Below are positions 1 through 47,700 of a stretch of 64,000 nt of DNA, one piece after another. The notes under the pieces were generated by a model. The model made no database searches. It was not told where the DNA came from and was given only the letters and a program-made list of their open reading frames with translations. Numbering within the stretch: the first letter of the stretch is position 1; every line of letters begins with the position of its first letter. Source of the DNA: Lepidodermella squamata (lineage: Eukaryota > Animalia > Gastrotricha). The stretch lies in NCBI GenBank assembly GCA_047495785.1, contig JBLDXI010000015.1:124001-188000 (forward strand), read 5' to 3'. Made by a program: the position numbers and the translations under genes.

Positions 1-350
1 AATCAATCAAACCTTTAACCCCAGTCGGTCATTCAAATTTTAAAACCACCAGAAATTCCGAAAAAAATTGTTACAGAATTACATCTTGTCCTTAAAATTC
101 TCAAGCACTCTTGCAAAAAACGCAATTCTCGATAACGCAAGAAATTTCAGGTCAAAGATTTCATATTTCCTAGCTTGGCAGCGAAAATAATGCATGAACT
201 TGTCAGTTCCGAGGCATTGTTTTTAAAATCAAGTCCACAACTAAGTAAACTAAGTAATTTTTCTTACAGTGAACTTGAATACTTATCAATTTTAGTATGG
301 AAGACCATGAATTTCATATCCGAGCCTGGTAAGAATTGAGTAAAACAAAC

Positions 351-24500: not shown

Positions 24501-25046
24501 GATTTTTTACGCTCTAAGCTTGCCTTACCATTTGAATACGACTGATGACTTGCGATGGTTTTACTTCCGTTTTAATGCACTCGAATTTTTGTGATTGTGA
24601 TTAATTATATTCAAGACTCGCTAGCTGCACTCTTACAGGAGGTGCTTTTATTACAGCCCGGTTGACAACAACTACTGTACAATCGTATTTTGATACGCGA
24701 CGGTCTTATCGCTCTAGTATCTATCAATTACTTGAACGCCATTTATTTTGGAAAATAAACAGTCGACTTGAGCCGTGCAATATTTACTGTTGCGCTTTTA
24801 CTGTTGCAAATTATGGTCATCCGCCATTGTGGCACAAATAAAAGCTGAATATTTTGAACTCCGCAGTTTTTCGAAAACCGAATGAAAAATGAAAGCAAAG
24901 GGATTATTAATTGAAACTTGTTTGTCAATTCCCGTACTAACTCGTCTCACTCTGAGTATTAATCCGCCAGCGTCTCGTATCAATGAGTGCGCATCAGCTG
25001 GCGAGGCAATACATAGTTCGATTGTCAGGAAAAGAATCAGCCGAAT

Positions 25047-25570: not shown

Positions 25571-25647
25571 GCGCCAAATCAGTGGGTCCCAATTATATCG
25601 CAAGAATATCGCATTTCGAATCGTTTGTGGCGTGGAAAAACCAGCTG

Positions 25648-26070
25648 TTACATAGCTATCGTCTTCTTGAGGGTTTCGATCATTTGCCGGCCTTCATTAG
25701 AATGCTTCTCAGACTCCAGAAATTTTTTTTCAGCCAATTCCTGTGCTGTTTGTCTCCTTTTGTTCTTCAAGTTTTCGCTGGCTTTGAATTTGTTTGACAA
25801 AAAAGATCAATTACAGCAGGTTTGCTCGATATGCAGCGAACATCAGCGAACATCAGCATTGTACACCATACACATTTTTTGTCGCTTTGACGTCGGCTTT
25901 GAACTGGCCCGCCAGCAGTTCCACGGCGTCAGCATTGCCATTTTTGACGGCCCATAGTACCGACGTCCAGCCATAATTCTTGGTTGCTTTATGGACATCG
26001 AGACCATAATTCGAGTTGTTTGATAATCGGGAAACTTAAATATGATCACCAGCTTTCAACGAGTCAAACA
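25648..26070 (-). pseudogene. Internally deleted, frameshifted copy of the ankyrin exon of kinase-ANK paralog B
   Basis: Colinear nucleotide similarity to 30808-31626 at both ends. Internal repeats are missing and the frame is broken. Confidence 0.85.
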
Positions 26071-26643
26071 TTTGCGTGAAATGAATAATTTCGTCAAAAG
26101 CTTTACAGCGTGGTGTTCCATCAGTTGACAAAAAAATCTGGCTTTTTTAACCACTAAAAACCTAGATCTTTGGTTCCGGTTCGCTACGGGAGGAGGTCGG
26201 ACATCTAAACCAGTAATGGTGACCATGTATCAATCGGCAATCAGCAAAACGAGTTTAACCTGCGAAACCGATGCAAGGACGCAAGAATGACCCACATCTT
26301 CCAATTTTCAGTTTCATCAAAATTATCAGGCGGCGTGAGACCATGAGCAGACCCAAAGACGTGAAAATAGGTCATACCCATGATCAAAGTTTGGGAACCC
26401 CGGCAAAGTTTTGTCATATCGGTCCGCTTGAAGTTGAGTATTATCTCGGGAAATGGGAAACACAGGGGCCGATTATTCTATCCTTCTCGCATTTGCCGTT
26501 ATCTCTGCAACGCTGCCTCAAAATATGATGCCAACCCGCCCGCGCCAAGGCAGCGCAAACAACAAAGGCAATTGTCACTTGTCACTCTCTCTGTCTTTTA
26601 CGCGTGTGTGTGTGCAGGTTTTCAGTTTTCAGGCATTTACGTA

Positions 26644-29339
26644 ATGGATCGTAACATGTTCAAATCAGCCCGCGAGTTCAATACGTGGACGGTGCTGGGC
26701 CGTGGTGCATTTGGCACGGTCTACTTGTGCGGAAGGGGAACAACTTATGAGAAATATGTTGTCAAAGAGGTTAACCTTACTCGACTGGAAGATGTTTTCG
26801 GAAACGATAACCGAGCAAGAAAGATAGTCAAAAGCAGCTCCGAAGAGGTAAGATGTCAATTAATTATGAGGAAATAAACCGTATTTTTTGGGCTGTGAAG
26901 CACTCGAAGTTAGAAAAACTACGGCATCCTAACATTGTGTCGTTGTATGGGGCCTTTCGAGGTAAAGTTGTTTGGCGCGCTGGTCTGATCAAATTTATGC
27001 GCGTATTTTAGAGCAATACTGCAGAGAAGAGAGGGAAAAACAAGAGTGCCAGATGTACTACTTGGTCATGGAGCACTGCGAGGGCGGAGATTTGGACAGT
27101 CGGATTGGAGTTGGTTACGAAAAGATCTGCGAAGTTCAGCTTCAATCTTGGGCTAGACAATTGGCGTCTGCGCTAAAGTTACTGCACGACAACGGCATCG
27201 TTCACCGAGACATCAAGCCGAAAAACATATTTTTGAGTCGTGATGAGCAAACTGTCAAACTCGGCGATTTCGGAATCGCAAAAGACTTGAATGAGTAAAT
27301 AATTGTGACTGCTGGAGTAGTAACATTTCGATGTGCAATATCCTATGATCTCTGAACAGGACTGTGACGACAAGCAGCTCACTGAGTGTTGCTACTTGGG
27401 ATTACGCAGCTCCAGATTACATCGATAAGAACGTTTATCAGCCGCCGTGTGACGTGTGGTCGTTCGGCGTTACTCTCTACGAACTGGCAAATTTTGGAAG
27501 ACCGGTAAGAGCGATTGGAAAGTGACATCATTTTGACTCATTTGATTTCATTTCAGTTCATCGGAGTAAATCAGTTTGTCCTTCGTTCTAACATTCTCAT
27601 GTAAGTCGAGGGCTCAAGTTTTCCGATTTTTATATGAGATTGCTTAGGTGATAATATTGAATGATCGTTTTCAAGACAAAATTGAATGACAGAAATTCCA
27701 ACCTTTCATAGTAATTTTTATCGTCAAATAACTTGAAAGTAACGAAACCACGAAATTTAGTGTTTCAGAGCTAGAGCAGCCTGAAACTTGAAAGAATGGC
27801 TTTTTCTTGCTGAAACATATGTATGAGCTGAAAATTCTGAGCCTCCATTTATTGTGGATTGCGGGTTTACTCCAGCAGTTATCGCGCAATAGGGGGCTAA
27901 CTCGCGAATTTTATGTACCACGGATTTCATCAACAATTTAATAGAATGTACTGTAATGGAAGTGGCGGGTCCATTTCAGAAACACCTTAGCGAGCCATAG
28001 CGAGTTTGGTTCAAAAGTTTGTGTCGTTCGATATTGATATTGTGCCAGAATCAGCAAATCAAATGAGCTTGACCATGTAATTTTTGGCCATATCCAGTCA
28101 GAAATCAATCATAAATAAGCAGAAATCGAAAACTTCCTCTGCCATTTCCAGCTTCAGCTTCAAATATCTCCGAATTTGATATGGTGTAAGTATCGTAATA
28201 AGAGAGCTTTTGTCTTACAGAAAACCGCCGCGGCCATTTGACGAGTCTCGAGGCTACTCTGCCGAATGCCGCGACTTCATCATGTCGCTGTTGGAGAAGC
28301 AGAGCAGCAGCCGACCGACCATTGATCAAGTGCTGAATCACGCATTTTTACGCGGCAATATTGCTATCGAAAGCCCGCAACAACCAGTTGCTCCTCAATC
28401 GGCGAAGCCGAACAGTGACGAATTTCCTAAATCGCAAGAGAACGTCGAAATGTCTCCAGGCTTAGATTTGACAAAGGTTGTTCGTCTTCATTGATTCTTC
28501 ATTTGTTTATTTACTTCTAAACAATCCAGGCTGTCGATCTCCCGAAAAACAGAGAGGATGCTATCAAGGTTGCTCCACATATCAAGTAGACATCATTTAT
28601 ATTTGAGTTTTCAATGTGATGATTGAAACAGGAATTCGTGAGATGCGCTCTTGAAAATGATGTGACCAGAATGTCACAACTACTGCTATGCAGCGACCGA
28701 TTCGGCCTGGATGTTAACGGCAAAAATTGGGACGACGAAGGAACTGCACTTCATGCCGCAGCAGAAAAAGGCCATGTTGCAACTATTGAATTGCTGGCGG
28801 GCACGTTCGAAGCCAACGTCAACGCGGCAAATCAGTACGGCAAGACGCCATTGCACAAAGCCGCCTTATGGGGCAAAGCTGACGTCGTGGAACTGCTGGC
28901 GGGCAAGTTCAAAGCTGATATCAACGCGGCAGATCGCGATGGCTCGACGCCAATGCACTTGGCCGCCGAATGCGGGCAGGCTGAAGTCGTGGAACTCTTG
29001 GCGGGCAAGTTCAAAGCCGACGTCAATGCTGCCAAAAAGGATGGCTCGACGCCATTACTCTGTGCTTCCTCGAATGGAAATGATATCGTCTTGGAACTGC
29101 TGGCGGGCAAGTTCAAGGCCGACGTCAACGCGGCAGATACGGATGGCAATACACCACTGATGACAGCTGCCAGGTGGACACGACCTGGTGCTGTTAATCT
29201 TCTTGTCAATAAATTCAAAGCCAACCCGAAATTGAAGAACGGTAAGGGACAAACTGCAATGGATTTGGCTAAAAAACCTGCTCTATCGACGTGTAACTCT
29301 TTCGATCAACGAATAATTATCAAAATCCTCACGGTTTAA
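26644..29339 (+). CDS. Ser/Thr kinase (NEK-like) + C-terminal ankyrin repeats, paralog A
   Basis: Multi-exon. Motifs GRGAFG, YVVKE, HRDIKPKN, DFG, WDYAAPD, DVWSFG. Final exon 28632-29339 has about 5 ankyrin repeats. Start may be 26656. Confidence 0.88.
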
Positions 29340-29559
29340 ATTTTCGCTTGATGCCAATAGATGTGCCTTGACTGTGAGTAATCTGGTCTCACTTCTGATT
29401 TCTAGATCATCATAGCCTTGCGATTATCGATGGCTCGTATGGCTTCGTCATTGTTTTAGTCAAAGACAACAATAAAGCAGGGTTACAGTGTTGACCATGA
29501 TTGTTATCGGTACAGATATATTGGGACTAATGGCAGTCCCAAGACAGTGATACGCGAGT

Positions 29560-29670
29560 TTTATTGGTTTATCGATATAAAAGCAGTTGGCGCACGTATC
29601 ACAATAATCACTTATTACTTAGTATTAACATACCGTACCAACAGCAGCAATGATCAAAAGTATTTGTTGA
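29560..29670. repeat. Duplicated fragment of the separase 3' flank/UTR
   Basis: TTATTGGTTTATCGATATAAAAGCAGTT.GCGCACGTAT.ACAATAATCACTT also occurs at about 38591-38645. Confidence 0.8.
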
Positions 29671-29989
29671 TCCCTTAAATCGTTTTGTAAAAAATAATCG
29701 TCCCGCATCTACTATCTACGATCTCGACTTGCATTACAAGCATTGATCGTTTATAGTCAGCTCCTGTCATAGATAAATAAAAAAGATAGATCTGACACGC
29801 TAGTACATTTATGTGTGCCGAAATGATTCATCAAGAGTTTTTGCTTTCTGGTCGCGTGACCTGAAAATCACTTGTCAACCTCACTATAAAAAATACGGCA
29901 TAATCAACGCAAGTGACAAGTGATTTTGGGTGGCTACTTCACCTCAATTTATCTCAAAACACACCCATTCGGCAAACTAGCCTCCGTCG

Positions 29990-30290
29990 GCACGCCGTCA
30001 CATCTGAAATCGCGATTCGGCGGCGGGATGATTCTGATTGCGAAAGCGCCGAGTCCGAGCGGCCTGGCAGCTATGCCTTGTACATACGTCTGATGCACTA
30101 TAAGCCCACCCATGGCCGGTGCTTAACTCTACTTTTTTGAAATAAAGCATTGCTTGCTATATTCAAGACTCGCTAGCTGCACTCTTACAGGAGGTGCTTT
30201 TATTATAGCCCGGTTGACAACTGTAAAATCGCATTTTGATACGCGACAGTCTTATCGCTCTAGTATCTATCAATTACTTGAACGCAGTTT
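29990..30290 (+). pseudogene. Duplicated fragment of the ABCA last exon and 3' UTR
   Basis: About 29993-30076 matches 24121-24204, and about 30157-30285 matches 24607-24738. Confidence 0.88.
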
Positions 30291-30807
30291 TTATGAAAGC
30301 AGAACGAGAGCAAAGGTTTGAAAGATTGAAACTTGTTTGTCAATTTGCGTACTTATATAAGTACTCGTCAAAAATCTCAGCTCCATTGTGGAACCACTGG
30401 TAAGTTGAACCTTCGCGCGCACGCTGATTGGTCAATTTATCGTTGCTAATGACTCCGGAATGAAACATTTTCGTCGTGCGATCCACTAATAAATTATTTT
30501 ATATTTATGTAAAAAATGACCTTGCCTCACCCTCTGCCCGGTTTCCATTGACCACGAGCGTAAACTCCATATTAATCGTGGTAAATTGCTGCGGCAAAAA
30601 ACACTTGTTGCAAAAAATGTTATGGATCGCACGACAGAACGTTTCATCCGGGAGTCATAGCAACGATCGATTGACCAATCAGCGTGCGCATTGGATTGGA
30701 CTTTTAAGTGGTCACACAATGTCACTCCGCCAGCGCCCCGTATCAATGCAACACTGGTGCCCATGATCTGGCGAGGCGAATCGTTCGTGGCGTGGAAGAA
30801 CCAGCTG

Positions 30808-33800
30808 TTACATAGCTATCGTCTTTTTGAGGGTTTCGATCATTTGCCGTCCTTCATTAGAATTGTTATCAGATTCAAGACAAGGGTTTTCAGCCAAATC
30901 CAGTGCAGTTTGTCCGTTTTTGTTCTTCAAGTTTTCGTTCGCTTTGAATTTATTGACAAGGAGATCGACAACAGCAGGTTTTGCACGATGTGCAGCGAAC
31001 ATCAGTGGTGTATCCCCATCCACATTCACCGCGTTGACGTCGGCATTGAATTTGCCCGCCAGTAGTTCTACGACGTCAGCGTTGCCAGGGAATGCGGCCA
31101 TGTGCAATGGCGTCCAGCCTTCCTCATTTGCCACGTTGGCGTCGGTCTTGAACCTTCCCGCCAGCAGTTCCACGACGTCAGCATTGCCATACCAGGCGGC
31201 AAAGTGCAGTGGCGTGTCACCGTCCTTATCTGCCGCGTTGACGTCGGCATTGAATTTGCCCGCCAGCAGTTCCACAACGTCAGCTTGGCCATTACCGGCT
31301 GCCATGTGCAATGGCGTCTGACCATCCTTATCAGCCGCGCTGACGTCGGCTTTGAACTTGCCCGCAAGCAGTTCTACGACGTCAGCTTTGCCATACGAGG
31401 CGGCCCAGTGCAACGGCGGCCAGCCATCCTCATTTGCCGCGTTGACGTCGGCTTCGAACTTGCCCGCCAGCAGTTCCACGGCGTCAACATTGCCATTTTT
31501 GACGGCCCATAGCAACGGCGTCCAGCCATATTTGTTTGCTTTATTGACATCGAGACCATACTTCGAGTTGCTTAATAACCGGGAAACTTTATTAAGATCA
31601 CCAGCTTCCAAAGAGTTGAACAGTTGCTAGAAATGAAGAAGTTTGTCAAAATCTTTACAGCGTGTCCCATTAGTTGACAAAAAATCAGGCTGGCAGAAAG
31701 TTATAACAACCTGGAGCTCTCTCCCATAATTCCTCTCTCTCTCCCTGGGTAAAAAATAATTTCGCAACGTTGCGCAACATGTTGGGGGTTCAACTAGGTG
31801 CTGATGGTGTTTACTTATTTAGCAGAAGAACTGAACTGAGTGTGTACTCCTGCTTGCATATTCCTAGCCAAGTTTCTAATTTAGTTTGCTGAATTAAAAG
31901 CTTATCTATCTAAGAGCATACAATTAGGTCTCATATCTGAGGACAAATAATGGGTACGTCGATTTTCTAGCATAGAAAGAACCGCGAGGAGTAAAGGCAT
32001 GGCGGGAATATGCTCTCTGTATGTATTTTCAGAAAAAGGACAGGCTAGTTGCTATTAAAAAATTGTCGCGCAACTTATGGGACACGCAGTAGACAATATA
32101 TACTTCTTCTCTAGATTTCCAAAACTTCCAGTTAATATTGCGCCATGTAGTTGCAAATCGTGCATCTCTTTGTTGTGATGACTGGAGTAAGGCAGGTTGG
32201 TCCTCACTTCGGCGATCTTCTACGATAGATGTATCTGCCTCTGACGATGAATGACTGTCGATTCCAGGAGCGTTCAAGTCTATCTGGAAGAAGTTGTCAT
32301 GCAAGATCTGGTCGATCGTCGGCCGGCTGTTTGGATCTTTATGCAGCATGGACAAGATGAAACTCTTACAACCACGCGAATACCCCCGTGAGTTGTCAAA
32401 AGCTCTCGGCGGGCTCCTTAAAACCAAACCAGAAAACTCAAATTCAGATACCTTTCTGCCCAAAAAACACGACAGCCTAAAATCTTAAGGTTTGGGTATA
32501 TCATTTTCGTTTCACGGAACTTATATCACAGGCAGGTTTGTGATCGAAAGCAAAGTGCAAATTTTGAGTCTGTAAAACATTTGATTCTGGTGGGCGCCAA
32601 TTTTTCTACCATAGGTAGTCTTGATCTTGAGCATGGCTCACGCCAGTGAGGTCTTTCATTGTTGCGAAACAAAAATCGCAAATTTACGTAAAATCCAAGC
32701 GAAATAATGCCAATAGCCAATAAGAGGAACATAATATCCCTCCGATGATGAATTATACTTATGACGATCAATTCAAGCAGTACCTAGTACGGTATAGTAT
32801 TGATGGTAAGCCCGATTATTTCCAATCATTTCCTCACGTAAACCAGGTCAAACTTACTCCGAAATGCTTCTGATAAGCAGAGGTAACACGGGTCCAGCAA
32901 ACTGAATAACATTTTTTTATTTCAGCACACGGTAAACATAAAAGCCATACCGGTTTGTTGAAATCAGCAAGTTCGAAAAGCGTGACGCCAAGCGACCAGA
33001 CATCGCACGGGCGTTCGTATCTGTTTGTATTAATGAATTCAGGAGCGGCATATTCCCACGACGCTACTCCTACTGTTGAGCTCGCGTTGGTACTTGAAAA
33101 TTAAGAAAAACAGGTTTCAAAAATAGAAAAGATTTCCTATCCGATTTTTATAATATAAAACATTGGGAAAGGAAAACATACTCGTTCAGATTCTTGGCAA
33201 TCCCGAAATCGCCAAGCTTAATAGTTTGCATATCCCCAGTGAGGAAGATGTTTTTCGGCTTAATGTCGCGATGAACAAAATTGTTGTCATGAAGAGCCTT
33301 CAGCGCATAAGCTATCTGGAGACCCCATTTCTGAATTTGTATCTCTGGGATTGGCTCCTTGCGATTTTCGATTTGCTTGGACAGGTCTCCACCTTCGCAA
33401 AACTCAAGTATTAAGTAGAAAATCTCACATCCTTTACGATCACGATCTTCGCCTTGGAAAAGCTCTGAAATAGTGCATCATGCATTATAATGAGTCATAG
33501 TCATTGTTAGCAGTAATGTACCTCTAAATGATCCGTAAACCCATACTATATTTGGATGACGCAATTTCTCCAACTTTGTATACTGAAGAAGAGAATGGAC
33601 AACGCTGCTTGTAATCGTCGTAGTAATGGGGCAAGCTTCACATACCTCTTCGCAGCTCATTTTGATGAGCTTCTTAGCCGCTTTCGGGTCTCGATTATCG
33701 CGTCTAATGCGCGATAGGTTGACTTCTTTCACGGCATATTTCTTCGAAGTTTTCTTATCAGTGCACAAGAAAACATCGCCAAAGCCACCTCCACCGAGAG

Positions 33801-33837
33801 GGTTCCAGCCTTCGAACTGCGAAGCTGATTTAAACAT
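30808..33837 (-). CDS. Kinase + ankyrin repeats, paralog B (apparently intact)
   Basis: Exons 33837-33646, 33582-33522, 33464-33182, 33092-32951, 32901-32858, 32416-32104 and 31626-30808. Motifs GGGGFG, YAVKE, HRDIKPKN, DFG, WEYAAPE. Six ankyrin repeats. Confidence 0.88.
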
Positions 33838-34325
33838 GGTTTCAGCTACAGCAAACTATTTGATATAAGGATTTGACTAGACGGCGCTCATCAGCCAGTT
33901 TCTAACTTTCCTACACTTTGATAAGGCGGTAGGTGTAACTATATGACCCGTAGATAAGGAAAAATGATATATCATCAGCCTGTCTGAAAGTACGACCTGA
34001 CACCTACCCTGCTTATTCTGATTTCTGATCAATATTATTGTGATACAATATACAATTATCTCAAAACACAAAACACGTGGGCACATATTAGACGCGAATC
34101 TGAGACTGTCCGTAAGAAAAGCAATGTATAACCTCGAACAGTCATTCACAATCGAAAATAATTATAAACCGCTTCTCGAGACAAATCAGACGGCTTCTTC
34201 AATCAAAGGTAAAAATAGAGGAGTGTGTTACTGTTGGACTGTTGGATGGACTGTTATCCCCCTGAAATTCGCACATTTGTCGTAAATTTTCACGGTTTGC
34301 GCCCAGAAGACGACCCCGAACTGAC

Positions 34326-34615
34326 TAGGACTGACTAAGGAATTGCGGCGGAAAAAGAAAACTAGCACTAAGAAGAAGCCAAGGATAAGAAGGGCAAAAC
34401 GCCGAAGAAAAAAGAGAAGGAAAAACCTGGCGAAAAAGAGTTTGAAATCAAAATTAAACCCGATTTTGAACAAGCTGGAATGGTGTCTTTTGAAAAAGAT
34501 GACTGGCGCATGATTGTTAAGTCGATTGAAATTTTCGGAAAAAGCAAGATCTTCAACTGTGGGGTTGGGTAAGGATTTCTCTATGCCTGCCTTCGCCCTT
34601 TTCAAAACCGGAATG
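34326..34615 (+). mobile_element. Short degenerate 3' fragment of the same RTE-like LINE family (copy 3)
   Basis: Encodes the Lys-rich tail, SFEKDDWRMIV and FGKSKIFNCG. Shares the 3' UTR motif GCCTGCCTTCGCCCT..TCAAAACCG. Confidence 0.85.
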
Positions 34616-34766
34616 GAATAGCAGTTTGAAATGATCTAATTCGTTGCTTTCACACGTCGATCACAATTATCAACTCGAAAATTGTAAAATCATCCAGGTA
34701 ATTTTTCTGCGAAAGCTCATTTCTGCGGTTGTGAAATGCAGGTATTGAATGCAAGCAAATTCCTTT

Positions 34767-37700
34767 TTACTTAGCTATCCTCATCGTCAGGATTTCGATT
34801 ATTTGTTGTTGTTCATTAGAATCCTTCTTAGATGAATCATTAGGGTTTTCAGTCTTATCCAGTGCAGTTTGTCCCTTTTTGTTCTTCCAGGTTGCGTTGG
34901 CTTTGAATTTATTGACAAGAAAGTCAACAACAGCAGGTTCTGTCCAATAGACAGCTATCATCAGTGGCGTGTCTCCATCCTTATCTGCCGCGTTGACGTC
35001 GGCCTTGAACTTGCCCGCCAGCAGTTCCACGACGTCAGCTCGGCCATTTTTGGCGGCCGAATGCAATGGCGTCCAGCCATTCTTATCTACCGCGTTGACG
35101 TCGGCTTTGAACTTACCCGCCAGCTTTGCCATTCGCGGCGGCAAAGTGCAATGGCGTCCAGCCGTCCTTCTTTGCCGCGTTGACGTCGGCTTTAAATTTG
35201 CACGCCAGCAGTTCCACGACGCCAGCGTGGCAATTACAGGCGGCCTTGTGCAACGGCGTCCAGCCATCCTTATCTGCCGTGTTGACGTCAACTTTGAACA
35301 TGCACGCCAGCAGTTCCACGACTTCAGCACGGCCATTCCAGGCGGACCAGTGCAATGGCGTCTTGCCATTTTTATCGGCCGCATTGACGTCGGCTTTGAA
35401 CGTGCACGCCAGCAGTTCCACGACTTCAGCACGGCCATCCCAGGCGGCCCAGTGCAATGGCGTCTCGCCATACTTATTTGCTATGTTAACATCGGCTTTG
35501 AACTCGCCCGCTAGCAGTTCAACAATTTCAACATGTCCTTTGGATGCTGCAGCATGAAGAGCAGTTCCTTCGTCGTCCCTCAAACTGAACGTCGTCTTAT
35601 ATTTTCCGTTAACATCCAGTCCCAATCGGTCCTTGTATTGCAGCAGTTGTGACATTCTCGCTGCGTCATTTACAAGTGCACATCGCACGAATTCCTGTTT
35701 CGATCATCACATCGAAAAAAGTCAAATATAAATGCTATTCATATGATGAAGAAATCAACCTTGATAGCTTTCTTTTTGTTTTTCGGGAGTTCGACCGCCT
35801 AAATTATTTACGTTTCAATTAAAATGAAAATTTTTACAGCCTTTGAAACCTTTACCGGGCTTGCAAGCTTCTGCTCGACTTTCTCTTGCGATTTAGACCT
35901 CGAGAATCCCTCTGTCCCTTGGTTCGGCTTGTCTGGTTGAAGAATGACTGGCTGTCTTAGTTGTTGTTGGCTTTCGACAACGATATGGCGGCGTAGAAAG
36001 GCGTGATTCAGCGCTTGCTCGATGGTCGGTCGGCGGCTGCTCTGCTTCTCCAACAGCGACATGATGAATTCAGTGCAATCAGCCGGGTAGCCTCGAGAAT
36101 CGTCGAATGGCCGCGGCGGTTTTCTGGGAGGAAAAACGGTATAACCTAACGAAAATGAGCTTTGAAATAGCTTGAAATTGAACCCTTTATTCGAAATTCA
36201 CCATTTACTCTCGATGGATATTAAATATTATATATATTTTTATTTTGCTACCTATTTAAATATTTCAATGACATAGTCAACCTCAGCACCCAGTAAAACA
36301 CTCAATTAAAGTACTAGATCGATGAACTTCGATTGATTCGAAAATGTTATGATTTTTTTTATCGAAAATCAACGAATTTCAACTTCACAATGAAAGAGTC
36401 AATTTTCCGCGAACCGGTGAAATAGACCCAATCATTAATTTTAAATTATTGTTCAGACACTTAAGAAAAACGGCAAACTGAAAGTGAAAAGGTCTGAAAA
36501 GACTTGATGGATCGCTAACATTTATCTCCTATCAAGAGTCGATTTATTATTTTGGGCTATTTCGAGTTATTTTGGGGAAATCGAAATATATCGGATTAGA
36601 TTCTAATCATCAGAACACGTTTTAGAGGTGGGTGATCAGGATAGGTACACTTACGATTGAATGTTTTCCATGACATCCATCTGCGTTCTTCCGACGAACT
36701 AATGAATAAAACAGCATGCAGAATGAAACATGATGGGAGGTGGCTTTTATTACCGGTTTCGCAAAATTTGCTAGTTCATAGAGAGTCACTCCAAACGACC
36801 ACACGTCACAAGCGCGCTGGTAATCGTTAGTCTCGATGTAGTCTGGAGCTGCATAATCCCAAGAAGCTACACTCAGCGTGTACTTTGTCGTTGCAGCCCT
36901 GCGCAAAATGGTAACAAGGCTTAACCCCGCGAAATAATGAAGCCACCGGCGATAGCAGTCGCTGAAAAGAGCCAACTTACTCGTCCAAGTCTTTAGCAAT
37001 GCCAAAATCGCCGAGTTTTACCGCTCGCCCGTCATGGCTTAGAAAAATGTTTTTCGGCTTGATATCCCGGTGGACGATGCCGTTGTCGTGCAAGAACTTC
37101 AACGCCGATGCAAGCTGTCTGGCCCAGGATTGCAGCTGCACTTCGCTGATCTTTTCGCGTCCTGTTCCGATCCGACTGTCCAAATCTCCGCCCTCGCAGT
37201 GCTCCATGACCAAGTAGTACATCTCGCATCCTTGTTTGACTTCATCATCACCGCTGTATGTCTCTAGATAACGTTCGTGGCGCGGAAGAACCCGCACTTC
37301 GATGATTTTTTGCCCTGACTGTACCCCGCGAGTACAGCCTTGGATACTATATGCAATACTGCGCGTTATGCTGTACTCGCGGGGTACAGTCAGGGCAAAA
37401 AATCATCGAAGTGCGGGTTCTTCCGCGCCACGAACGATAATATACCCTTAAAATAAGGTCTAATCAGTGCAAAAATCTTTCCTACCCTTGAATGAACCAA
37501 ATATCTGGACAATGTTGGGGTGTCGCAGTTTTTCCAACTTGGAGTGCTGCAAAAGCGAGAAATATCTCGTTTTATCATGTGCTTCCATCTATCACTTCAT
37601 AATATCTTACCTCGGCGCAGCTGATTTTAACAAGTTTCCTAGCTTGATTTTCATCACTGAAACTCCGTTCGAACTGAGTGAGGTTTACTTCCTTGACAAC

Positions 37701-37802
37701 ATAGTTTTCATCAGTTGTCCCCCTTCGGCAAAAGTAGACCGTGCCAAAGCCGCCATGGCCTAAAACCGTCCACTTATTGAACTCGCGTGCTGATTTGAAC
37801 AT
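34767..37802 (-). CDS. Kinase + ankyrin repeats, paralog C (frameshifted in repeat 5; truncated gene or pseudogene)
   Basis: Motifs GHGGFG, YVVKE, HRDIKPKN, DFG, WDYAAPD. Seven repeats are split over two frames by a ~17-nt deletion near 35122, giving a stop at 35113. Confidence 0.85.
37272..37436. mobile_element. 165-bp MITE with perfect 67-bp TIRs and 4-bp TSD ATAA, intronic in paralog C
   Basis: 37272-37338 is the exact reverse complement of 37370-37436. ATAA lies at 37268-37271 and 37437-37440. Confidence 0.92.
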
Positions 37803-38753: not shown

Positions 38754-41700
38754 TCAGCCGTCAGAGCAGCTGTTAGCAATCACCGTTTCTCTGCTTATTG
38801 CCAGCGGCAGGCCGTAGCAAACCGGCGCGGAGCCGTTCAGAAACCGCAACTTGCAGTTCGCCCTCGCTCTATTCAAACACCCGATCAACGACACAGTTTT
38901 CGGCAGAGCAGCCAGCTCAGCCCTGGTCAGTTCAACCGGCGGTGGGTGGTCCTTATTGCCGGGAAAGCCGCGTCGCCACGAAGGCGTGAGGGCCGAGTCG
39001 AGAAACGCCATCAAAAACCTGTCAATATCGACGTCAGTCACGTTGAACAAATTGCCAAAAACGGCCGGCGACAACGCGAGTGGGAAAAACAGAGCTGAGT
39101 TGTGCAGATCCCGACGCCGCGAGTCGACCAGCCGCAGGGAGGAGCAACCCATCAGAATGCCAATGGCAGATGCCTTCTGGTAGATTTCGCCGTTCGACTC
39201 CAACACAGATGCGTTTTGCGTCTGACTCTGCTGCTGCGCGGCCGTGAACACGACTTTGTGGTCGGCCAAGTCGCGGAATGTCGTCGAATGCAGGCCGGAA
39301 CCGTGGCCGATGAACACGAACATTTGCGTTCGCCGCAGTTGTTCCAGGAGTTCCCGCGCCGATGGGAAACGCCCGACAAAACCAGTCCAGCTTGGAGTTC
39401 GCCTAAAATTAAAATTCACAATCGAGTACTCAGGTGTGTACCGTAACGCGCCCAAAATTTGGACACCCCAAATCGCTACTAAATCGCATTTAAAAACACG
39501 AAAAAAATTGCGCATCAAGGAATATAATTTGTGTAAGGTCGAATTAGCATACGCAAAGGAGGTGTCCAAATTTAGAGGTTTCTTTAACTATTTTTTTAAA
39601 ATCAAGGTGAGCCCCTAAATTCTCCAAAATTTACGTGCCGATCCGAATTCCTCGGGCGAATGTTTTTAAATTTTTTTAGATTTTTTGGACTAAAACCAAA
39701 TTTTTAGTAATTAAACAACTTGTTTTGTCCAAAGTTAGGACCCATTACGGTAAATAGAGATTTTTTCATTGCTCGGAGTTGAAGCAACAAATTGTTTATT
39801 GAACTCACGTTGTAACAATTGGTTCAAAGGTGGCTCTCGTTTTCGCAAGGTTATTTTCAGGATCCAGCACGTAGGACAGCGACTCGAGTGGCCATTTCAC
39901 GAACTGATGGGCGCCCACCAGTTGGCACGATGGCGTTGACCGCAGGGCTGTTCGCAGTTGGTGCACAAGAAAGGGAAGCGTCAAGGCCCGTGTGACGGCT
40001 AGCCCTCGCATCGACGGCACGTCTTCCCACGTGAACGGCGTTGTCCATGCGTCGAGAAGTAGCACGACGATCGGCCGAGTTCCGCCAACTTCATCATCGT
40101 CACAGTCTCCAGCTTCCTCGGCTTTCTCGCTAAAAGACAACAGATCAATCAAAAATATGCTAGCAGAGCATTTGCAAGCAACGAAAAATGTATCCAACTG
40201 CCCACGACTCTCCTTATTCAAGGTATAAAAAAATGTCATAACCTCAAGTCCATATCCAAGCAAGACTGTAAATCCGTTTGGAATCAGCTCGGTGATTTTG
40301 ATAATATGATATAACGATATCATAACCAGACAGAGAATGGGTCGGGTAATTGGGGTCATGCTTTCCCCATTTCTTTTCCTGGGTTTTGGGTCGCTGTTGG
40401 GTTCTTGCCAAAATGATCGTGAGAAATGACACATAAAAATGACCTAATTAATAACCTCATTTCTCAGGCTCTACTTACAGCATCATAATTACTAACCGTT
40501 GCAACTAACATTTAGAGAAACCAAATTTGTATTCGAAATCGGATTTACTGTGCCAAATCATACTTACCAAATTGCTTATTAATTCCACTAATTCGCGATT
40601 TACTAATTAGTGGTTTATATGAATAAAATTTCATATTGAAGTTTAATCGACTTTTGTGATCGAGTCTCAACAATTGGCGACGCGGAGAAAAACATCATCA
40701 TGAGTGACTTGGCCGCGATTTTGGAGCGTTTGACTACATTGACAGCTTCGCAGGCCGAGGCATTAGCCCAGCATTCCGCTGCGCTCGACTTGTTGTCATC
40801 AAACAATGAAACCAAGGTTACCAAAGAATTTCCAGGGTTCGACCCGCAGTCCGAGATATGGGAAGATTATCAGGAACGGTTCGATAATTTTACGAAGGCT
40901 CACGCGAAATCGAAAACGAAAGCGGCCTATTTCCTGAGTTGCCAGTCAGAGGCGATTTTCACGAGATCAAAACTTACCTTCAGCAACTGCCTTCCCCGAA
41001 AAAAGTGAACGATGCGACTTACGACGACATCACGGTCTTTATGCAGAAGCAGTACGACCCGAAGAAGTATGTCGTCCGCGAACGTCACAAGTTTTGGAAT
41101 AATATTGGTAGAAAGGCGGGTGAGTCGATTCCTCAGCTGGTTGCCAGAATTCGCCAGGATGCGGCTACCTGTGGTTTTTCGAATATCACTAACCCCTTAG
41201 ATGAAGCGTTGCGCACCCGCTTCATTTGCTCTGTCAAAAATGAAGCAGTCTTAAAGGCGATTTTCAAGATTTCTGATACCGATCTTTCATTTCAAAAGGC
41301 CATTGATGTCGCGCTTGAAGTGGAGGAGGCGGCGAAAGTTGCCAAGGAGACAGTTTCTGGTCCTCAATTGTCTTCTCAGTCAGTGCACAACGTGTCTTCG
41401 GATGGTCGTCGAGCTGGAGTCAAGAATAAGAACAAACGTCGACAAGGGTCGAAGTTCGAAATTTCAATCGTCGAATCGCGAATCTTGCCGGGCGTGCGGC
41501 AAATTCGATCATCATCGAAATACTTGCAAGTTCAAAAATGCTGAGTGCCATTTTTGTCACAAACTAGGTCATATTCAAGCGGCTTGTCTCAGTCGTCAAA
41601 GGGCTGATCGACAAACATCGTCTGTTCCTCAACCCGTCAATGCTATTCGTGCTCAGGGTGGCCGCTCTCTTCAGGTGATCGATCGCGAATCGAACTCGAG

Positions 41701-44700
41701 TGACGCTATTTTTCAATCGTTTTTAGTGTCAAATCGGTTAGTCCAGCTCAAAATTGACTGTGGCTGTGGGGTAAATTTCATTTCGACCGAGGTTTGGAAA
41801 CAAGTCGGTTCTCTTGCTCTTCATCCCTGCAGCACTCGATTCGTCAGTGCGTCGAATCACCCGATTCCTGTTTCGGGCACAGTCGTCTTACCAGTCTGCA
41901 TTTCCGGTCAGCGAAATGTTTCGGACGTTTTGTTTCATGTTTCTGCTCATCTTAATCTGCTTGGCCGTAGTGGAATTCTTCAAATGAATTTGTCTATTGA
42001 TCAGTTGCTGGGAATAACATCTGGTTCTACTTCAACTCGTCAGTTTGTTTCAAAGATTTTTGATAACATTAAGCCGGATTCGGAACTACAAAAGGCCTGC
42101 CGCGACCTTTGCAATGAATTTCCGGAGTTTTTCAAACCTGAACTCGGTTGTTTGCGCGATTTTGAGCTTGAGGTTAAATTTAAGCCCGAGTCGGTGCCGG
42201 TTTTCTGCAAGGCTCGACCGGTTCCGTTTGCTCTTGAACAGGACCTGGTGGATGCCTACGACGCCGGGGTGGCTAAAGGAGTTTGGGAACGGGTTCAATT
42301 CAATGACTGGGGTACGCCGGTTGTTCCTATTCAAAAACCGTTGCTTCCTGGCGAGACTAAACGGAAGTTGCGAGTTTGCGGCGATTATTCGGCTTCGATT
42401 AATTCTCAGCTTGAACCTCATCGTTATCCACTACCTCTTCCAGCTGATTTGATGCGGAAATTACGTGGCGGCTATGGCTATAGTCAGATCGATTTGGCCG
42501 ATGCCTACAACCAGATTTGCTTGGGTCCAGTGTCCCAAAAACGGCTGGCTCTTTCAACTCACAAAGGGGTTCTTCTTCAAAAACGATTACCTTTTGGAAT
42601 TACTTCAGCGCCGGGCTATTTTCAAGAAATCATGGATAAATTGACCAGCGATTTGCCTGGTGTTGCTTGTTTTCTCGATAACATTTTTGTGTCTGGGATC
42701 GATGCCGCTGATCATCTATCGAATCTACGAAGGGCTTTGAAGCGCCTGGTTGATAATGGTTTGCGTGGTCGATTGGAAAAATGCGATTTTGCCATGCCGG
42801 TCATCGCCTGTTTGGGACATTTTTTGTCATCTGAAGGTTTGGCGATTGGACCTAAGGTTGATGCGGTTTTGGCAATGTCTGCTCCGACAGATGTGGGTAC
42901 GTTGAAGTCATTTTTGGGGCATGTTCAGTTTTATGCAAAATTTCTTCCACCGAACTTGTCCTCCATTCTTGAACCGCTGCGGTTCTGGTTCATTTTGACC
43001 CGAGTAAGACTCTGGGTTTGGCTGCCGATGCTTCAGAAGTTGGGATTGGGGCCGTTTTGTTTCATCGATTTGAAGATGGTTCGGAACGACCAATCGCCAA
43101 TGTTTCGAAATTACTCAGCAGCAGTCAGCGTCGTTATAGTCAGATTCAACGTGAGGCTCTGGCTATCATCTTTGGATTGAAAAAGTTTCATCAATTCGTC
43201 TACGGTCGTCATTTCATCATTGTCACTGATCATAAACCTCTGTTGTCGCTTTTTGGCTTCGACAAAGCGACGCCGACTATGGCGGCTAATCGTCTAGCCC
43301 GTTGGTCCTGGATTCTTCATCAGTATGACTACGACATCGAGTACCGAGCGACTGCCAAGCACGGAAATGCTGATGCCCTGAGTCGATTGCCTGGGTCGCC
43401 TGACAATAATTTTGATGGGGAGGAAAGTGCTGATGATGTTCAAATGGTTTGCCAGGTCAACTTGATTAGTCAGCAATTAAATGCTATCAACTCGACTGGC
43501 CACGACCCATTGGTTTTGGTTCGTGAGTCGGAGAAAGATCCAGTGATTTCTTCGGTTATTCGCTTCGTGGAAAATGGCTGGGCGGAGAAGCTTAACGAGT
43601 CGAAGTTGCAAGAAGTCAAGGAATTTAAAAAGTTGTCAGATTTCCTATCAGTTTCGGGCAAATGTCTTTTCTATGGCTCTCGAGTTGTTATTCCGACTTC
43701 TTTACGTAGTCACGTGCTTGAAATTTTACATCTGGGTCACATCGAAATCAGGCGAATGAAACAACTGGCTCGAAGCGCTGTTTATTGGCCTGGAATTGAC
43801 GCAGAAATTACCGAAACGGGTCAAAATTGTGTCTCATGTGGTGAGCATCAGAATTTGCCGGTTAAGGCGGCTGTTCATCCGTGGATGTTGCCGGAAGTTC
43901 CGTGGAGCCGACTGCATGTTGATCATGCGATCAATTTTCTGAAAACGAATTGGTTGGTTGTAGTCGACGTTTATTCGAAATACCCATGTATTCACCCTAC
44001 GAGTTCGGTGTCTACAAAAGCAACGACAGATCTTCTTGACGGCGATTTCGCTCATTTCGGATTTCCTCACGCGGTGGTCACCGACAATTCAACCACTTTC
44101 ACATCGGAGGAGTTCCAGGAGTGGTGCGAGGAGAAGGGCATTGTTCATCTATCTGGAGCGCCTTATCATCCCGAAACCAACGGTCAGGCGGAAAGAATGG
44201 TAGAAACGTTCAAACAGAGTATGAAGAAATCGAGCTTGGTTCCGAAAACTGCTCTGAACGAATTTCTCATCACTTACCGTCGTACACCGCTGCCGAATGG
44301 TCATTCACCCAGCGAACTGTTGAATGGCAGACAAATTCGCACAAAAATCGATCTGTTGGTTCCATCACCGTTGCAGTTCGAACTGATGCGTCTCAATCGA
44401 CGAACAAAGGGGCGAGCATCTGCGGAAATCAACTTTAAAGTCGGTGATCGGGTGTTTGCTCTGTACCATGGTCAGGTCCGTGACCGAGAACCAAAATGGT
44501 ATTTGGCTGAGGTTCTGAAGGTCGAAGGCCCACGTACCTGTGAAGTTAAGGTTTTGCCCGACGGCCCTATTTGGCGTCGACACTCAGATCAGCTGAGACC
44601 GTTCAAGGGTCCACCCGATGTTGTGTCTTCACAAAGACCGCCGGTGGCGGAACCCGATTCGTCATCAAGCCCGATTGCGACATTTACTCGCGACAATCCT

Positions 44701-47700
44701 CGCCGCTCAGGACGTTTGCAAGCGAAGTCTTAGGTTTTCGAATGCCGGTACATTCTCAGCCAGCGGTGAAGGTGTTGGGTTCTTGCCAAAATGATCGTGA
44801 GAAATGACACATAAAAATGACCTAATTAATAACCTCATTTCTCAGGCTCTACTTACAGCATCATAATTACTAACCGTTGCAACTAACATTTAGAGAAACC
44901 AAATTTGTATTCGAAATCGGATTTACTGTGCCAAATCATACTTACCAAATTGCTTATTAATTCCACTAATTCGCGATTTACTAATTAGTGGTTTATATGA
45001 ATAAAATTTCATATTGAAGTTTAATCGACTTTTGTGATCGAGTCTCAACAGTCGCCATGAATGACCCACACTGCCATCAACTATGATCGGCATGTTCTCG
45101 TGATTCAGACTGCCTCATCAGAGGCTGAAAGGCATTTTAGCTCGCTGGGAAGCACGGCTACGCCTGACAGAGCCCGGCTCAAGGCCCATTTAAAATGTGT
45201 TCGATTCGCCTGATAACGCCTGATTTTACAGCCGCTATTGTTAATTCGCTTCAATTAATGCGGATAACATACCATTCAAATTACTATGCTTATCTGTTTG
45301 CAGAAATATCAGACGCCGGGATCTCTGCAGCAGACGGAGAATTATCTGAAGGTTTTCCCTCTAAGCAGCTACATAATTGTATCCAGATGTGGTCGGTAAT
45401 GTCAGGATTGCTTATCCGCCCGAAGTTATGGCTGAAGCTATCGATGCTGTTGCGAAATGCTCGCACCTCTCCAAGAGTGGAAGCCGACAACAGCAAAATA
45501 CCATCGAGTACGTCCGTACCCTGCACAACATTCCTGGCGGCAGAACAATTGGTCGCGGCAATGCTGACGCGGCCGCGAATAATTCCGCTAAGAGCCGAAA
45601 GACGAAGGAAGACGAGAATGGCAACAAGGCAAGCAAGCCGCCGCGTAAGACGCGGGGACGCCGGTTGATTTCTTTGAGGTACCTGCTTTAATAATTAAGT
45701 TTTGACCTCATTATAATACCCAACTGTTTGAATTTTCAGGCGAATGGAACGACTTCTACTTGAAACTCGATCCGGTAAAGCTGCCTTTGACGTTGGCGTC
45801 ATCGACTCGGAGGGTGTTAACGACACCGAAAGCCGCGTTGAAGTTATTGTAAATATGGAGCAGGTGTCCACTCACCTCAAATCTCTGCAGCTACGCCAGG
45901 AGTCGTTGACGGGGGAAGCCTTCGAAAAAATGTTCAATTGCCTGAAGGCCGATAAACTGATAAAATCCAAGGAAGACTTTTACAAATACATTTATCAACG
46001 TTTCACATTCAAGAGAAAGTACGTCTGAAATAAAATGATTACTTTTCGAGCATTTGTCGGCTTGGAGAAGTTTCTCGATTGCGGTTTGCCTCTCTACGAG
46101 GCGTATAAGCTAAAGGCCCTTTGACACAACTAAAAGCCGCGGATCCGAATTTCTATCGTGACTTCTACGACTTCTACGTGACCTCTACGAACAGTCCTGC
46201 AAAACCACATGTTTTTGATTCGCCTGATAACGCCTGATTTTGCAGTGTCGCATTTCATGGATACTCCGCTAGTAATGACTCAACTAAGTGCGAACTGGAG
46301 TGCCTTCCGGATGGTTGCTTACCCAGCTTCTTGATATCATTGTTAACTTGGTCTTGAGGTATGCACTTCAGTTCAAATTTCTCAGTCGCACCACGAAAAC
46401 TTCCGTTCCTGGAGACGACTCCGCTTTCGCTCCCGAGTCTGATCTAATTGATCTCCGCGGAACTGCGCGATACTCCCAACCTCTCTCCTACTCCGTAACC
46501 AGTCCGGCCCTACTACCAAACAAAGCAGAACCGACCTATCAAAGACTACTTTACATCTTGTTCCAACGTTTTCAAAAGCTCCATGTTGTCGTCTGGCTGC
46601 GCCTCAATTTGTCAGACTTCGAATCCGGCTTCGCTGCTGCCGTCACCAACTTCTTTGCTGGCAATATGGCCAACATCGGTTGTTCTGTCAAGTTTGCCCT
46701 GAAAAATGGCTTGAATGCTTGCTACTTTTCTATCAATTTTATACTTGTTGAAAACTATTTCGATCGCCATTCTAATTTTTTAAATCGCAGTCGTGCAGTT
46801 GTTGAAACAACAAATTGGCTGTCAATAAAATAATAAGTATTCTAGTCACTTTCGTCGAGTTTTCAATTTCATTCTCTAAATTTCCATTTCTTTTGAGTCT
46901 CAATTCAATTGCTGTCAGCTTATTGCTTTGGATGAAGGGAAGGGCATAACAAAAAAATCCGTTTTTAGTTTTTCAAAGTTGTCTTTTAGGTTACTGTATA
47001 CTCGCAATCATTGATAAACCCTTTAAAATCCGCCTCTGATGTTTCAAATGATGATTTCCACCCAGTTTCCCAGATAACGTAACTAAGCAAATATTCCGGT
47101 GTTTATAGAATAATGAATGAGAATGATGACTAACCAATTAGCTGCATCTTGCACCAAATCAGGCGGCAGCAAATGCTCGCGCACGAATTCATCCGCATCG
47201 TCCATGAGAGCAGCCATCGCACGATCCAACGCCGCCCTGCTGTTCCAGAACTCCTTGCGCGTTTTCAACCGCAACGACTCCTCATTATCCGACATGAGCT
47301 GCTCGAAACGCGCCAACAAGCCCAACAACGGCGCAGCATCAACAAATTTCACCTCAGGCTGGTCGCGGCGATGCCTCGCCCGCCACGTCACAATCCCAGC
47401 CGACCGCGAACAAGCTCCATTCACAGGCGAAGCACCTGAAAATCGATGAACTGCTGAATCTCTTGAGATATTGAATTATAAAATTACCTGGGGGTAAAAT
47501 GTGAAGCGATACAACTGTCCATTGCACGGGTAGCTCTTTCGCTGCTTCGACGAAATCGTCGAAAACAGGTGGGAATCGCGTCAACAGCCGAACATCCCGC
47601 AGTTGCCTGAGGTCCTCCTGGCCTTTCCTACTCGAATTTCCGCAATTGGCTTCGGTAGAGATGCGTTGAACAGCCAGAACTGCCCGTAGCATATGCCGGA

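Follow-up and report, generated by a model that had tools for sequence, protein, structure and literature searches.

We found that a 64,000-nt stretch of DNA from the gastrotrich Lepidodermella squamata (hereafter, the window) carries neighboring genes in which a protein kinase domain precedes an array of ankyrin repeats. The reading that we prefer, with a probability of roughly 65%, is that these are tandem members of a large lineage-restricted family, in which the array serves as a variable target-binding module diversified by turnover, exchange and selection. Amino-acid change in the arrays is concentrated on the beta-turn and on an exposed stripe of the inner helix, where it exceeds the silent change of the framework. 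The features are listed below by their positions in the window.

26644-29339, plus strand: gene A, a kinase-ankyrin gene of six exons that seems intact (frames read; Pkinase and Ank matches)
26848-26900, 26962-27011 and 27295-27359: introns 1-3 of gene A, GT-AG, phases 0, 1 and 2
27012-27294, plus strand: exon 3 of gene A, catalytic core with HRD and DFG (Pkinase E 1e-22, profile positions 70-149)
28632-29339, plus strand: ankyrin exon of gene A, with an N-cap, five 34-aa units, a half-unit cap and a tail; acceptor ending at 28631
30808-33837, minus strand: gene B, six-exon kinase-ankyrin gene, apparently intact (frames and introns read)
30808-31626, minus strand: ankyrin exon of gene B, six units and cap (Pfam matches, AlphaFold2 model)
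33182-33464, minus strand: exon 3 of gene B, catalytic core (NEK1 top solved match, E 1e-19)
34767-37802, minus strand: gene C, with intact kinase exons and a frameshift in the ankyrin exon
34767-35694, minus strand: ankyrin exon of gene C, seven units and cap in two reading frames; acceptor ending at 35695
35113-35124, minus strand: 17-nt deletion in unit 5 of gene C, junction at 35118-35124, premature stop at 35113-35115
36981-37263, minus strand: exon 3 of gene C, catalytic core (Pkinase E 4e-24)
25617-26143, minus strand: relic, a decayed partial copy of the 3' end of gene B (81-85% nucleotide identity to 30777-31087 and 31433-31691)
24606-24938, no strand assigned: part-copy of the 3' flank of gene B, from the same segmental duplication as the relic

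Each of genes A, B and C consists of five kinase exons followed by a single ankyrin exon built of 34-aa (102-nt) units, with a half-unit cap after each array. The units number five in A, six in B and seven in C, in agreement with the sequence-only reading, in which repeat number differed among the paralogs. Tandem Repeats Finder reported three arrays with a period of 102 nt (28794-29147, 31029-31529 and 35128-35520), the three large ORFs matched the Pfam ankyrin family Ank_2 with E values of 1e-38 to 1e-66, and the upstream exons matched Pkinase. When the frames were read, the array formed one open exon in each gene (C being read in two frames); that of B starts at 31626 or 31604, depending on the choice of acceptor. 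The exons of A and B are fully open, and their intron phases are conserved. In B and C, in-frame stops immediately precede the start codons, so that there is neither an N-terminal extension nor a signal sequence.

The kinase exons, searched one by one, matched the Pkinase profile (PF00069) with E values of 1e-24 to 2e-4, exon 1 covering profile positions 3-42, exon 3 positions 70-149 and exon 5 positions 227-263; where exons 4 and 5 begin and end is uncertain, and some 10-20 profile positions near helix G are unaccounted for. A, B and C thus belong to the eukaryotic protein kinase superfamily. The glycine loop, the beta-3 lysine, the helix-C glutamate, and the HRD and DFG aspartates were all read in their translations, and HRD and DFG are invariant across 15 aligned core exons of the family, so that the kinase domains look active as judged from their motifs. 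They are under purifying selection (A versus C: dN 0.14, dS 0.8, dN/dS about 0.17).

As for the type of kinase, the sequence-only reading had called it NEK-like and distinct from the TKL kinases RIPK4 and ANKK1. Among solved structures, NEK1 was the first match of the core exon of gene B, but GCN2 came first and NEK1 second for that of gene A, and a profile of 15 core exons scored 88.8 bits against GCN2 and 85.9 bits against NEK1; NEK1 is therefore close, but GCN2 is equally so. Exon 4 gave weak matches to tyrosine and TKL kinases. No RIPK was found among the best 60 solved matches in three catalytic-exon searches, and we rejected a RIPK4/ANKK1 identity, as the earlier reading had expected. 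RIPK4, ANKK1 and DAPK1 are cytoplasmic animal kinases that likewise carry the kinase domain N-terminal to the ankyrin repeats, and their genes are conserved, with one to few copies and divergent repeats. The likeness to RIPK4 and ANKK1 is one of domain order, whereas homology of the window kinases to the RIPK (TKL) kinases is unsupported.

An AlphaFold2 model of the ankyrin exon of gene B (pLDDT 92) showed two helices per 34 residues, the first spanning unit positions 4-10 and the second 14-23 (numbered from the G before TPLH), and it matched EHMT1 and ankyrin-B/G with a TM score of about 0.8 and an rmsd of 1.5-1.9 A. The exon encodes a canonical solenoid of 34-aa units. Entropy in the window arrays was highest at unit positions 2, 7, 10 and 11, which sit in the beta-turn and inner helix, followed by 13 and 31-34, and the same ranking was obtained with 193 units from other loci. 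The positions singled out beforehand as variable (before TPLH, after LH and after AA) are these entropy peaks, both in the window and in the 193 units. The framework had been described as nearly invariant, which proved too strong: its identity is about 80% within and between arrays, and whole units of the window arrays are 67-75% identical to one another.

The proposed coincidence of these positions with the randomized surface of DARPin libraries holds in part. Of the six library positions, unit positions 2, 10 and 11, which we take to be DARPin library positions 5, 13 and 14 (Binz 2003 design), are among the most variable, but unit positions 31, 33 and 34, the remaining three (library positions 2, 3 and 33), vary only moderately. 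Position 7 is not a library position; 7 and 32, presumably DARPin positions 10 and 1, vary in the window, whereas their counterparts are fixed in DARPins. The arrays resemble designed ankyrins in their consensus-like framework (up to about 40% identity, rmsd about 2 A), but their unit has 34 aa in place of 33, with one additional residue past helix 2. The variable-face positions are also the least conserved ones in ordinary ankyrin repeats; therefore, position alone proves little.

Rates of change say more. By counting methods, the four sites 2, 7, 10 and 11 (HV4), which were selected for their variability, showed in the window a pN of 0.55 against a framework pS of 0.26 (ratio 2.1, bootstrap fraction 0.0015), and the a-priori set of DARPin sites gave a ratio of 1.5, which was not significant. 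Across independent pairs from the whole family, again by counting, the rate of change was 2.1 times the silent one at sites 2 and 10 (Bonferroni below 0.01) and 2.0 times at site 32, so that the per-site comparison of dN with dS suggested earlier places sites 2, 10 and 32 above the silent rate after correction. In young arrays, the framework pS was 0.02 and the HV4 pN 0.42, a difference of about 20-fold, with changes only at codon positions 1-2. Framework dN/dS was well below 1, and the array tails evolve almost neutrally (dN/dS 0.7-0.95). Faster change of the likely binding face is moderately supported by the window and strongly by the wider family.

The two halves of gene B have incongruent histories. 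In the kinase, its silent sites are saturated against A and C (pS 0.80-0.83), and it is sister to a gene on another contig, C16, which is also the nearest paralogue by exon 3 (87% identity, as compared with 58-60% for A and C). The ankyrin exon of B is A/C-like overall (dS 0.3-0.5) and is the only part that aligns well with A and C at the nucleotide level: the framework pS of its internal units is 0.22-0.33 against A and C versus 0.69 against the C16 gene, and dS of its last unit and tail is 0.34-0.52 against A and C. Arrays have therefore been exchanged between kinase lineages. Loci on contigs C3, C32 and C12 share position-specific synonymous codons with A, B and C, to 83-100% for internal and 23-60% for terminal units. 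The internal units all derive from one ancestral DNA unit, common to arrays on other contigs, and the units at either end are of old origin and specific to their position. Shuffling of repeat modules, as proposed from the sequence alone, is borne out by these histories and by one within-array duplication (C2-C3), but the search for gene conversion gave no recent tract in the window, where no identical tract exceeds 48 nt; exchange in the window is thus old.

The loss of copies is also seen in the window. Unit 5 of gene C has 85 nt where 102 nt are expected, and the deletion junction falls between the copies of a 7-nt direct repeat, both of which are kept, 17 nt apart, at the equivalent place in unit 4. 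The deletion of 17 nt shifts the frame and brings an early stop, so that gene C is either a recent pseudogene or the source of a truncated product. The relic contains the end of intron 5 of B, the N-cap, the first and last units and the tail, without internal units, and it carries stops and a frameshift. Two segments of the duplicated 3' flank, 24606-24739 and 24880-24938, are 92.5% and 78% identical to 30158-30285 and 30295-30353, respectively. Of the three fused paralogs and a relic described earlier, A and B are intact but C is frameshifted, and the relic exists but lies outside the cluster's span of 26644-37802.

The family comprises at least 60 loci across dozens of large contigs, clustered and in TE-rich surroundings, and no kinase-then-ankyrin relatives were found in public proteins. 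It is large and probably lineage-restricted, with A, B and C as tandem members beside a relic; the presence of a frameshifted gene and a relic next to two intact genes within such a family supports the birth-and-death evolution proposed earlier, and the window trio shows its loss side. Under the preferred reading, the proteins would be serine/threonine kinases of the cytoplasm that carry an ankyrin solenoid at the C-terminus, whose array, a putative target-binding module, may bring a partner or substrate to the kinase. Binding specificities would diversify as units turn over, paralogues exchange sequence and point substitutions are selected, copies would be lost continually, and A, B and C would be older members in which homogenization has ended.

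The nearest precedent in architecture, on which the comparison is based, is in Giardia, where a kinase is followed by 1-26 ankyrin repeats in 133 of 198 Neks and deletion of a repeat alters localization, an association seen in no other species according to that study (Manning et al. 2011, PMC3218828). The Giardia kinases (including 'Protein 21.1') resemble the window genes in an N-terminal kinase, possibly Nek-like in the window, ahead of an ankyrin array of varying length, and in massive expansion within a single lineage with quick gain and loss of copies. They differ in belonging to a protist with almost no introns, in being mostly catalytically dead (HRD and DFG are kept here in 15 of 15 core exons), and in having divergent 'TALM'-type units, in contrast to the homogenized units with a variable face found here. 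The evolutionary mode is matched by the ankyrin repeats of fungal NLRs, part of the highly internally conserved ANK/TPR/WD repeats of these receptors, which are reported to evolve in concert and to be positively selected on their concave side (Dyrka et al. 2014, PMC4986451). Such repeats, with Podospora het-d/e/r as examples, share with the window genes 33-34-aa units of near-identical framework, variable repeat number, exchange within and between paralogues, and selection on the inner helix and beta-hairpin. Exchange between paralogues of this type was found here in the synonymous codons and the incongruent histories of gene B, and positive selection of concave-face positions at sites 2, 10 and 32 family-wide and in the window HV4 set (2.1-fold), both by counting methods. 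Against an identity threshold above 85% over at least 100 aa, the window arrays remain at 67-75%, and three sister arrays on contig C3 (L002, L005 and L009) reach or approach it at 82-87%. The present host is an animal, and such highly conserved repeats make up 0.8% of metazoan repeats (PMC4986451); the partner here is an N-terminal kinase. The exons and linkers of A, B and C yielded neither a NACHT nor an NB-ARC domain, and an NLR/STAND receptor identity was rejected for want of that NTPase domain. Genes with an NB-ARC domain occur elsewhere in this genome, with a different ankyrin unit.

One possible explanation, suggested by the sequence-only reading, is that the genes encode dedicated intracellular pathogen or non-self sensors, a NOD-less counterpart of fungal NLRs whose variable face binds pathogen molecules and whose kinase signals. 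The signature shared with the fungal repeats, the size, clustering, TE-rich setting and turnover of the family, the excess of nonsynonymous change on the face, and the presence in the genome of at least 38 NB-ARC genes (with clear ankyrin arrays in at least two of 12 loci read) speak for it. However, no TIR, death fold or NOD domain lies in or beside A, B and C, the NB-ARC genes do not share the ankyrin unit, and gene families involved in reproduction, conflict or toxins are likewise subject to diversifying selection. We regard a sensor role as unlikely. A low probability of the same order attaches to Nek-type cytoskeletal or ciliary scaffolding kinases as in Giardia, whose arrays would set localization and whose variation would reflect relaxed constraint and subfunctionalization of many paralogues in a heavily ciliated animal instead of an arms race. 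This is consistent with NEK1 as first or second solved match, the Giardia precedent (PMC3218828) and the fact that variable and framework sites of the window arrays contrast only moderately, but relaxed constraint cannot make nonsynonymous change outpace silent change, and such an excess exists family-wide at sites 2, 10 and 32 and, about 20-fold, in young arrays. GCN2 also matches as well as NEK1, exon 4 is nearer to tyrosine and TKL kinases, and the Giardia repeats are divergent.

Less probable again is that the trio is mostly dead or dying DNA, the active members being elsewhere. The frameshift in C, the adjoining relic, the nearly neutral tails and the end of homogenization would fit, but A and B keep open exons, intron phases and full catalytic motifs, and the dN/dS of kinase and framework is low. 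By far the most improbable is an artefact of assembly or of multiple displacement amplification, with chimeric or duplicated sequence. The assembly was probably made from amplified DNA of very few animals, and there are family loci that form inverted pairs of equal score within a single contig; on the other hand, nucleotide differences of 20-40% separate A, B, C and the relic, none of which is a copy of another in this sense, each gene has its own intron set, and the family spans dozens of large contigs.

A more far-reaching version of the preferred reading, which we consider unlikely, would have a spiralian animal with germline-encoded, fast-diversifying intracellular receptor-kinases, in which a DARPin-like face senses foreign or selfish molecules, the fused kinase signals without a NOD module, and ankyrin exon and unit exchange renews the repertoire. 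If the binding face is under diversifying selection, an animal ankyrin recognition repertoire would be coupled directly to a kinase; it would offer a natural counterpart to DARPin libraries and a tractable case of repeat exchange and point selection yielding new specificities. Gene families of Gastrotricha are barely studied, and the evolutionary mode has been documented mainly in fungal NLR repeats and the architecture mainly in Giardia. What the window contributes is direct evidence for the movement of ankyrin exons from one kinase lineage to another.

The window is eukaryotic DNA with introns (C15:124001-188000 of a 121.2-Mb assembly in 151 contigs), and Tandem Repeats Finder detected in it three arrays with a period of 102 nt. 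Three large open reading frames gave strong ankyrin matches in Pfam, and the exons upstream of each matched Pkinase. A six-frame reading together with a splice-site scan gave the following kinase-ankyrin genes.

26644-29339 (+), gene A
33837-30808 (-), gene B
37802-34767 (-), gene C

All three share one plan, in which five kinase exons and a short linker are followed by a single exon with the entire ankyrin array. Introns 1-3 lie at homologous positions in phases 0, 1 and 2, are of the GT-AG type and mostly measure 50-90 nt; the exon 4/5 boundaries are uncertain from genomic DNA, with ~10-20 profile positions near helix G unaccounted for. Exons were searched and folded singly, and exon blocks were pooled only for base composition and substitution counts. 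The translations contain all catalytic motifs (glycine loop, beta-3 lysine, helix-C glutamate, HRD and DFG). Since B and C have in-frame stops just upstream of their start codons, and since the glycine loop starts ~15 residues into the protein, the predicted proteins would have no signal peptide or membrane anchor and should be cytoplasmic.

The core exon (exon 3, with HRD and DFG) found its best solved matches in NEK1 and GCN2, 8-10 bits above the rest, both with single sequences and with a 15-member profile, and no RIP kinase was near the top of these matches. The sequence-only reading had called the kinase NEK-like; this is a fair label, but GCN2 matches equally well, and membership of the NEK family would be tentative. 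Exon 4 leaned weakly to tyrosine and TKL kinases and is too short to classify the kinase, as is exon 1 when compared with solved structures. In a big search with the core exon, the top ranks were dominated by proteins with at least two kinase domains (RSK/MSK, merged gene models), whose names carry no classification value.

The arrays comprise 5 units in A, 6 in B and 7 in C, plus a half-unit cap, in agreement with the counts first proposed. We found that C is not intact. Its fifth unit has 85 nt, having lost 17 nt between the copies of a 7-nt direct repeat, both of which unit 4 of the same gene retains. The deletion shifts the frame and leads to a stop at 35113-35115. Just past the deletion junction, window 35113-35124 (-) reads as a near-perfect 5' splice-site consensus. 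The relic, a decayed partial copy of the 3' end of B, does exist, but at 25617-26143 (-), outside the span of 26644-37802 to which it had been assigned. It copies the end of intron 5 of B, the N-cap and the first unit, and resumes only at the last unit, which it copies together with the tail. The relic has stops; part of the B 3' flank is copied beside it (24606-24938). The description of the repeat framework as nearly invariant was overstated for the window, in which framework identity is ~80%, whether units of one array or of different arrays are compared, and whole units are 67-75% identical.

When units were numbered from the glycine before TPLH, entropy in the window units peaked at positions 2, 7, 10 and 11, followed by 13 and 31-34, and the same peaks were found independently in 193 units from other loci. 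In a confident AlphaFold2 model of the B ankyrin exon (pLDDT 92, pTM 0.89), helix 1 spans unit positions 4-10 and helix 2 spans positions 14-23. The model fits onto natural as well as designed ankyrin domains with an rmsd of 1.5-2 A; sequence matches to such domains were also found. From this helix placement, position 2 would lie in the beta-turn, and positions 7, 10 and 11 would form one exposed stripe of the inner helix; positions 31-34 are predicted to sit in the hairpin loop. The beta-turn and inner-helix stripe are established as the concave binding face of ankyrin repeats. The same assignment is made in published work (PMC4986451). The most frequent residue at positions 2, 7 and 10 is tryptophan. 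We take positions 2, 10 and 11 to be positions 5, 13 and 14 of DARPin libraries, and positions 31, 33 and 34 to be library positions 33, 2 and 3, with position 7 presumably outside the library set. The correspondence with DARPins is incomplete, as the library-equivalent positions 31, 33 and 34 vary only moderately in the kinase-ankyrin units, whereas the variable position 7 has no library counterpart.

Ordinary ankyrin repeats are likewise most variable at these positions, and the test was therefore made against silent change. For the 12 internal window units, nonsynonymous difference (pN) at positions 2, 7, 10 and 11 was 0.55, as compared with a synonymous difference (pS) of 0.26 in framework codons, a ratio of 2.1; in a bootstrap over units and sites, the fraction at or below zero was 0.0015. 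With the a-priori DARPin site set, the ratio in the same units was 1.5 and not significant. Across the family, 56 nearest-neighbour pairs that are phylogenetically independent gave 2.1 times the silent rate for sites 2 and 10 (Bonferroni below 0.01), 2.0 times for site 32 and 1.4-1.7 times for sites 7, 13, 33 and 34, as compared with 0.1-0.5 times for framework sites. Three young arrays on contig C3 showed a framework pS of 0.02 versus a pN of 0.42 at the four sites, almost all changes falling in the first and second codon positions of variable codons. Acceleration on the binding face is thus strong in the family and moderate in the window, as measured by counting methods rather than full codon models. 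The 15 internal units of these young arrays (L002, L005 and L009, C3:288702-317323) are virtually identical in nucleotides save for a few codons, differing at codon positions 1-2 of codons 2, 7, 10, 11 and 32-34 with third positions fixed. Adenine-specific mutagenesis of the kind seen in DGRs was ruled out for them, as the changes are not limited to adenines.

In a repeat-level tree, the last units (A5/B6/C7) clustered by position with support of 100/100, as did the first units of A and C (100/100). The internal units formed an unresolved star with no grouping by gene, except for C2-C3 (95/91), a within-array duplication, and no positional orthology was seen between the internal units of A and C. 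Terminal units carry few of the common synonymous codons, the usual sign that homogenisation spares array ends. The longest exact matches linking the window arrays are 25-48 nt, as compared with 69-154 nt in the young arrays. Recent gene conversion in the window was ruled out, as no exact match between its arrays exceeds 48 nt; exchange there is old, and the arrays are now drifting apart.

A and C arose by duplication of a whole gene, and they align at 74-76% in exons and short introns, with a dN of 0.14 and a dS of ~0.8 in the kinase. Silent divergence between them (26656-29339 versus 37802-34767) falls along the gene, from ~0.9-1.1 in exons 1-3 to 0.63 in exon 4 and 0.27 in exon 5, and is 0.3-0.5 in the ankyrin exon, suggesting that exchange affected the 3' half more recently than the 5' half. 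The history of B is incongruent between its two parts. Between its kinase and those of A and C, silent sites are saturated (pS 0.80-0.83, dN 0.33), and the nearest relative of the B kinase is a gene on contig C16, with 87% core-exon identity versus 62% or less for all others. The internal units of B, however, share position-specific synonymous codons with A, C and arrays on contigs C3, C32 and C12 (match 83-94%), as compared with a 40% match for the C16 gene. Framework pS of B is 0.22-0.33 against A and C versus 0.69 against the C16 gene, and its position-specific last unit and tail have a dS of 0.34-0.52 from A and C. This incongruence shows that the ankyrin exon, or the greater part of it, has been exchanged between kinase lineages. 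Codon bias was ruled out as the source of the low silent divergence, since GC3 does not differ between kinase and ankyrin exons and since the synonymous codon fixed for a given amino acid varies with the position. The start of the relic copy inside intron 5 fits a breakpoint region of such exchange. The shuffling of modules proposed earlier is supported as an exchange of units and exons among paralogues, given these incongruent histories, but not as recent conversion in the window. The C16 gene (L004, C16:676738-680442) has ankyrin units that are silent-saturated mutually (pS 0.76), and is an ordinary, non-homogenised array inside the same family.

Genome-wide, there were at least 150 scored matches to the core kinase exon and at least 227 to the ankyrin exon. 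The two match lists combined gave ~67 same-strand kinase-then-ankyrin pairs within a few kb, some of them perhaps duplicated artefacts, and further family genes lie on C15 just outside the window. Several locus pairs score equally (C78:399-1517 (-) and C78:21056-22174 (+); C36:85365 and C36:99173; C36:404900 and C36:412816; C42:1850417 and C8:57675), some of them inverted on one contig. Such pairs may stem from real duplication in the recent past or be palindromic artefacts of DNA amplification, and they might make the family seem larger than it is. The published Lepidodermella squamata genome was obtained from amplified DNA (122 Mb, 157 contigs, 43% GC), and its paper makes no mention of kinases or ankyrin (PMC11660948). 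In the literature collection searched, no paper paired "gastrotrich" with "ankyrin". A length-limited word search with the B ankyrin exon yielded just generic ankyrin proteins, whose identity was at most 50% and which all lacked a kinase. An exhaustive search of the core kinase exon against 1.84 billion representatives gave nothing above 58% identity; an ankyrin unit occurred in only 2 of the top 150 hits, neither in kinase-then-ankyrin order. Single-copy orthologues across taxa, which the sequence-only reading had held to count against it, were not seen in these public-protein searches.

The best-supported reading of these data is a lineage-restricted family of cytoplasmic kinases, in which the ankyrin solenoid would act as a variable target-binding module. 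The family would evolve by birth and death, with units and exons exchanged among paralogues and accelerated change on the putative binding face, and the window would hold older members, one recent casualty and one relic. Birth and death, as first proposed, is borne out by the frameshifted C and the relic beside other members. As to what such a module might serve, the analogy with the repeats of fungal NLRs (PMC4986451) makes an immune role a reasonable guess; its main rival would be a cytoskeletal role like that in Giardia (PMC3218828).

NB-ARC also has at least 38 matches in the genome, most of them inside long open frames (500-1100 aa). Of the 12 NB-ARC loci read (L031-L042), at least two, L034 and L042, have clear C-terminal arrays of a 34-aa ankyrin unit, so that NLR-like genes with ankyrin arrays would coexist with the kinase family; a shared unit was ruled out, the NB-ARC unit being different. 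The kinase-ankyrin cluster sits in DNA rich in transposable elements, and the other features of the window were as follows.

264-1799 (-), nearly single-exon ATG9 gene, best public match an ENA protein at 71% identity
7956-9179 (-), reverse transcriptase fragments
38754-39569 (-), open reading frame matching the C-terminal part of separase (Peptidase_C50, E 7e-17), directly adjoining gene C
41303-44733 (+), LTR retrotransposon open reading frames (reverse transcriptase, RNase H, integrase)
50451-51488 (-), Glyco_transf_15 (alpha-1,2-mannosyltransferase) open reading frame, of a family known mostly from fungi
61401-62378 (-), further reverse transcriptase fragments
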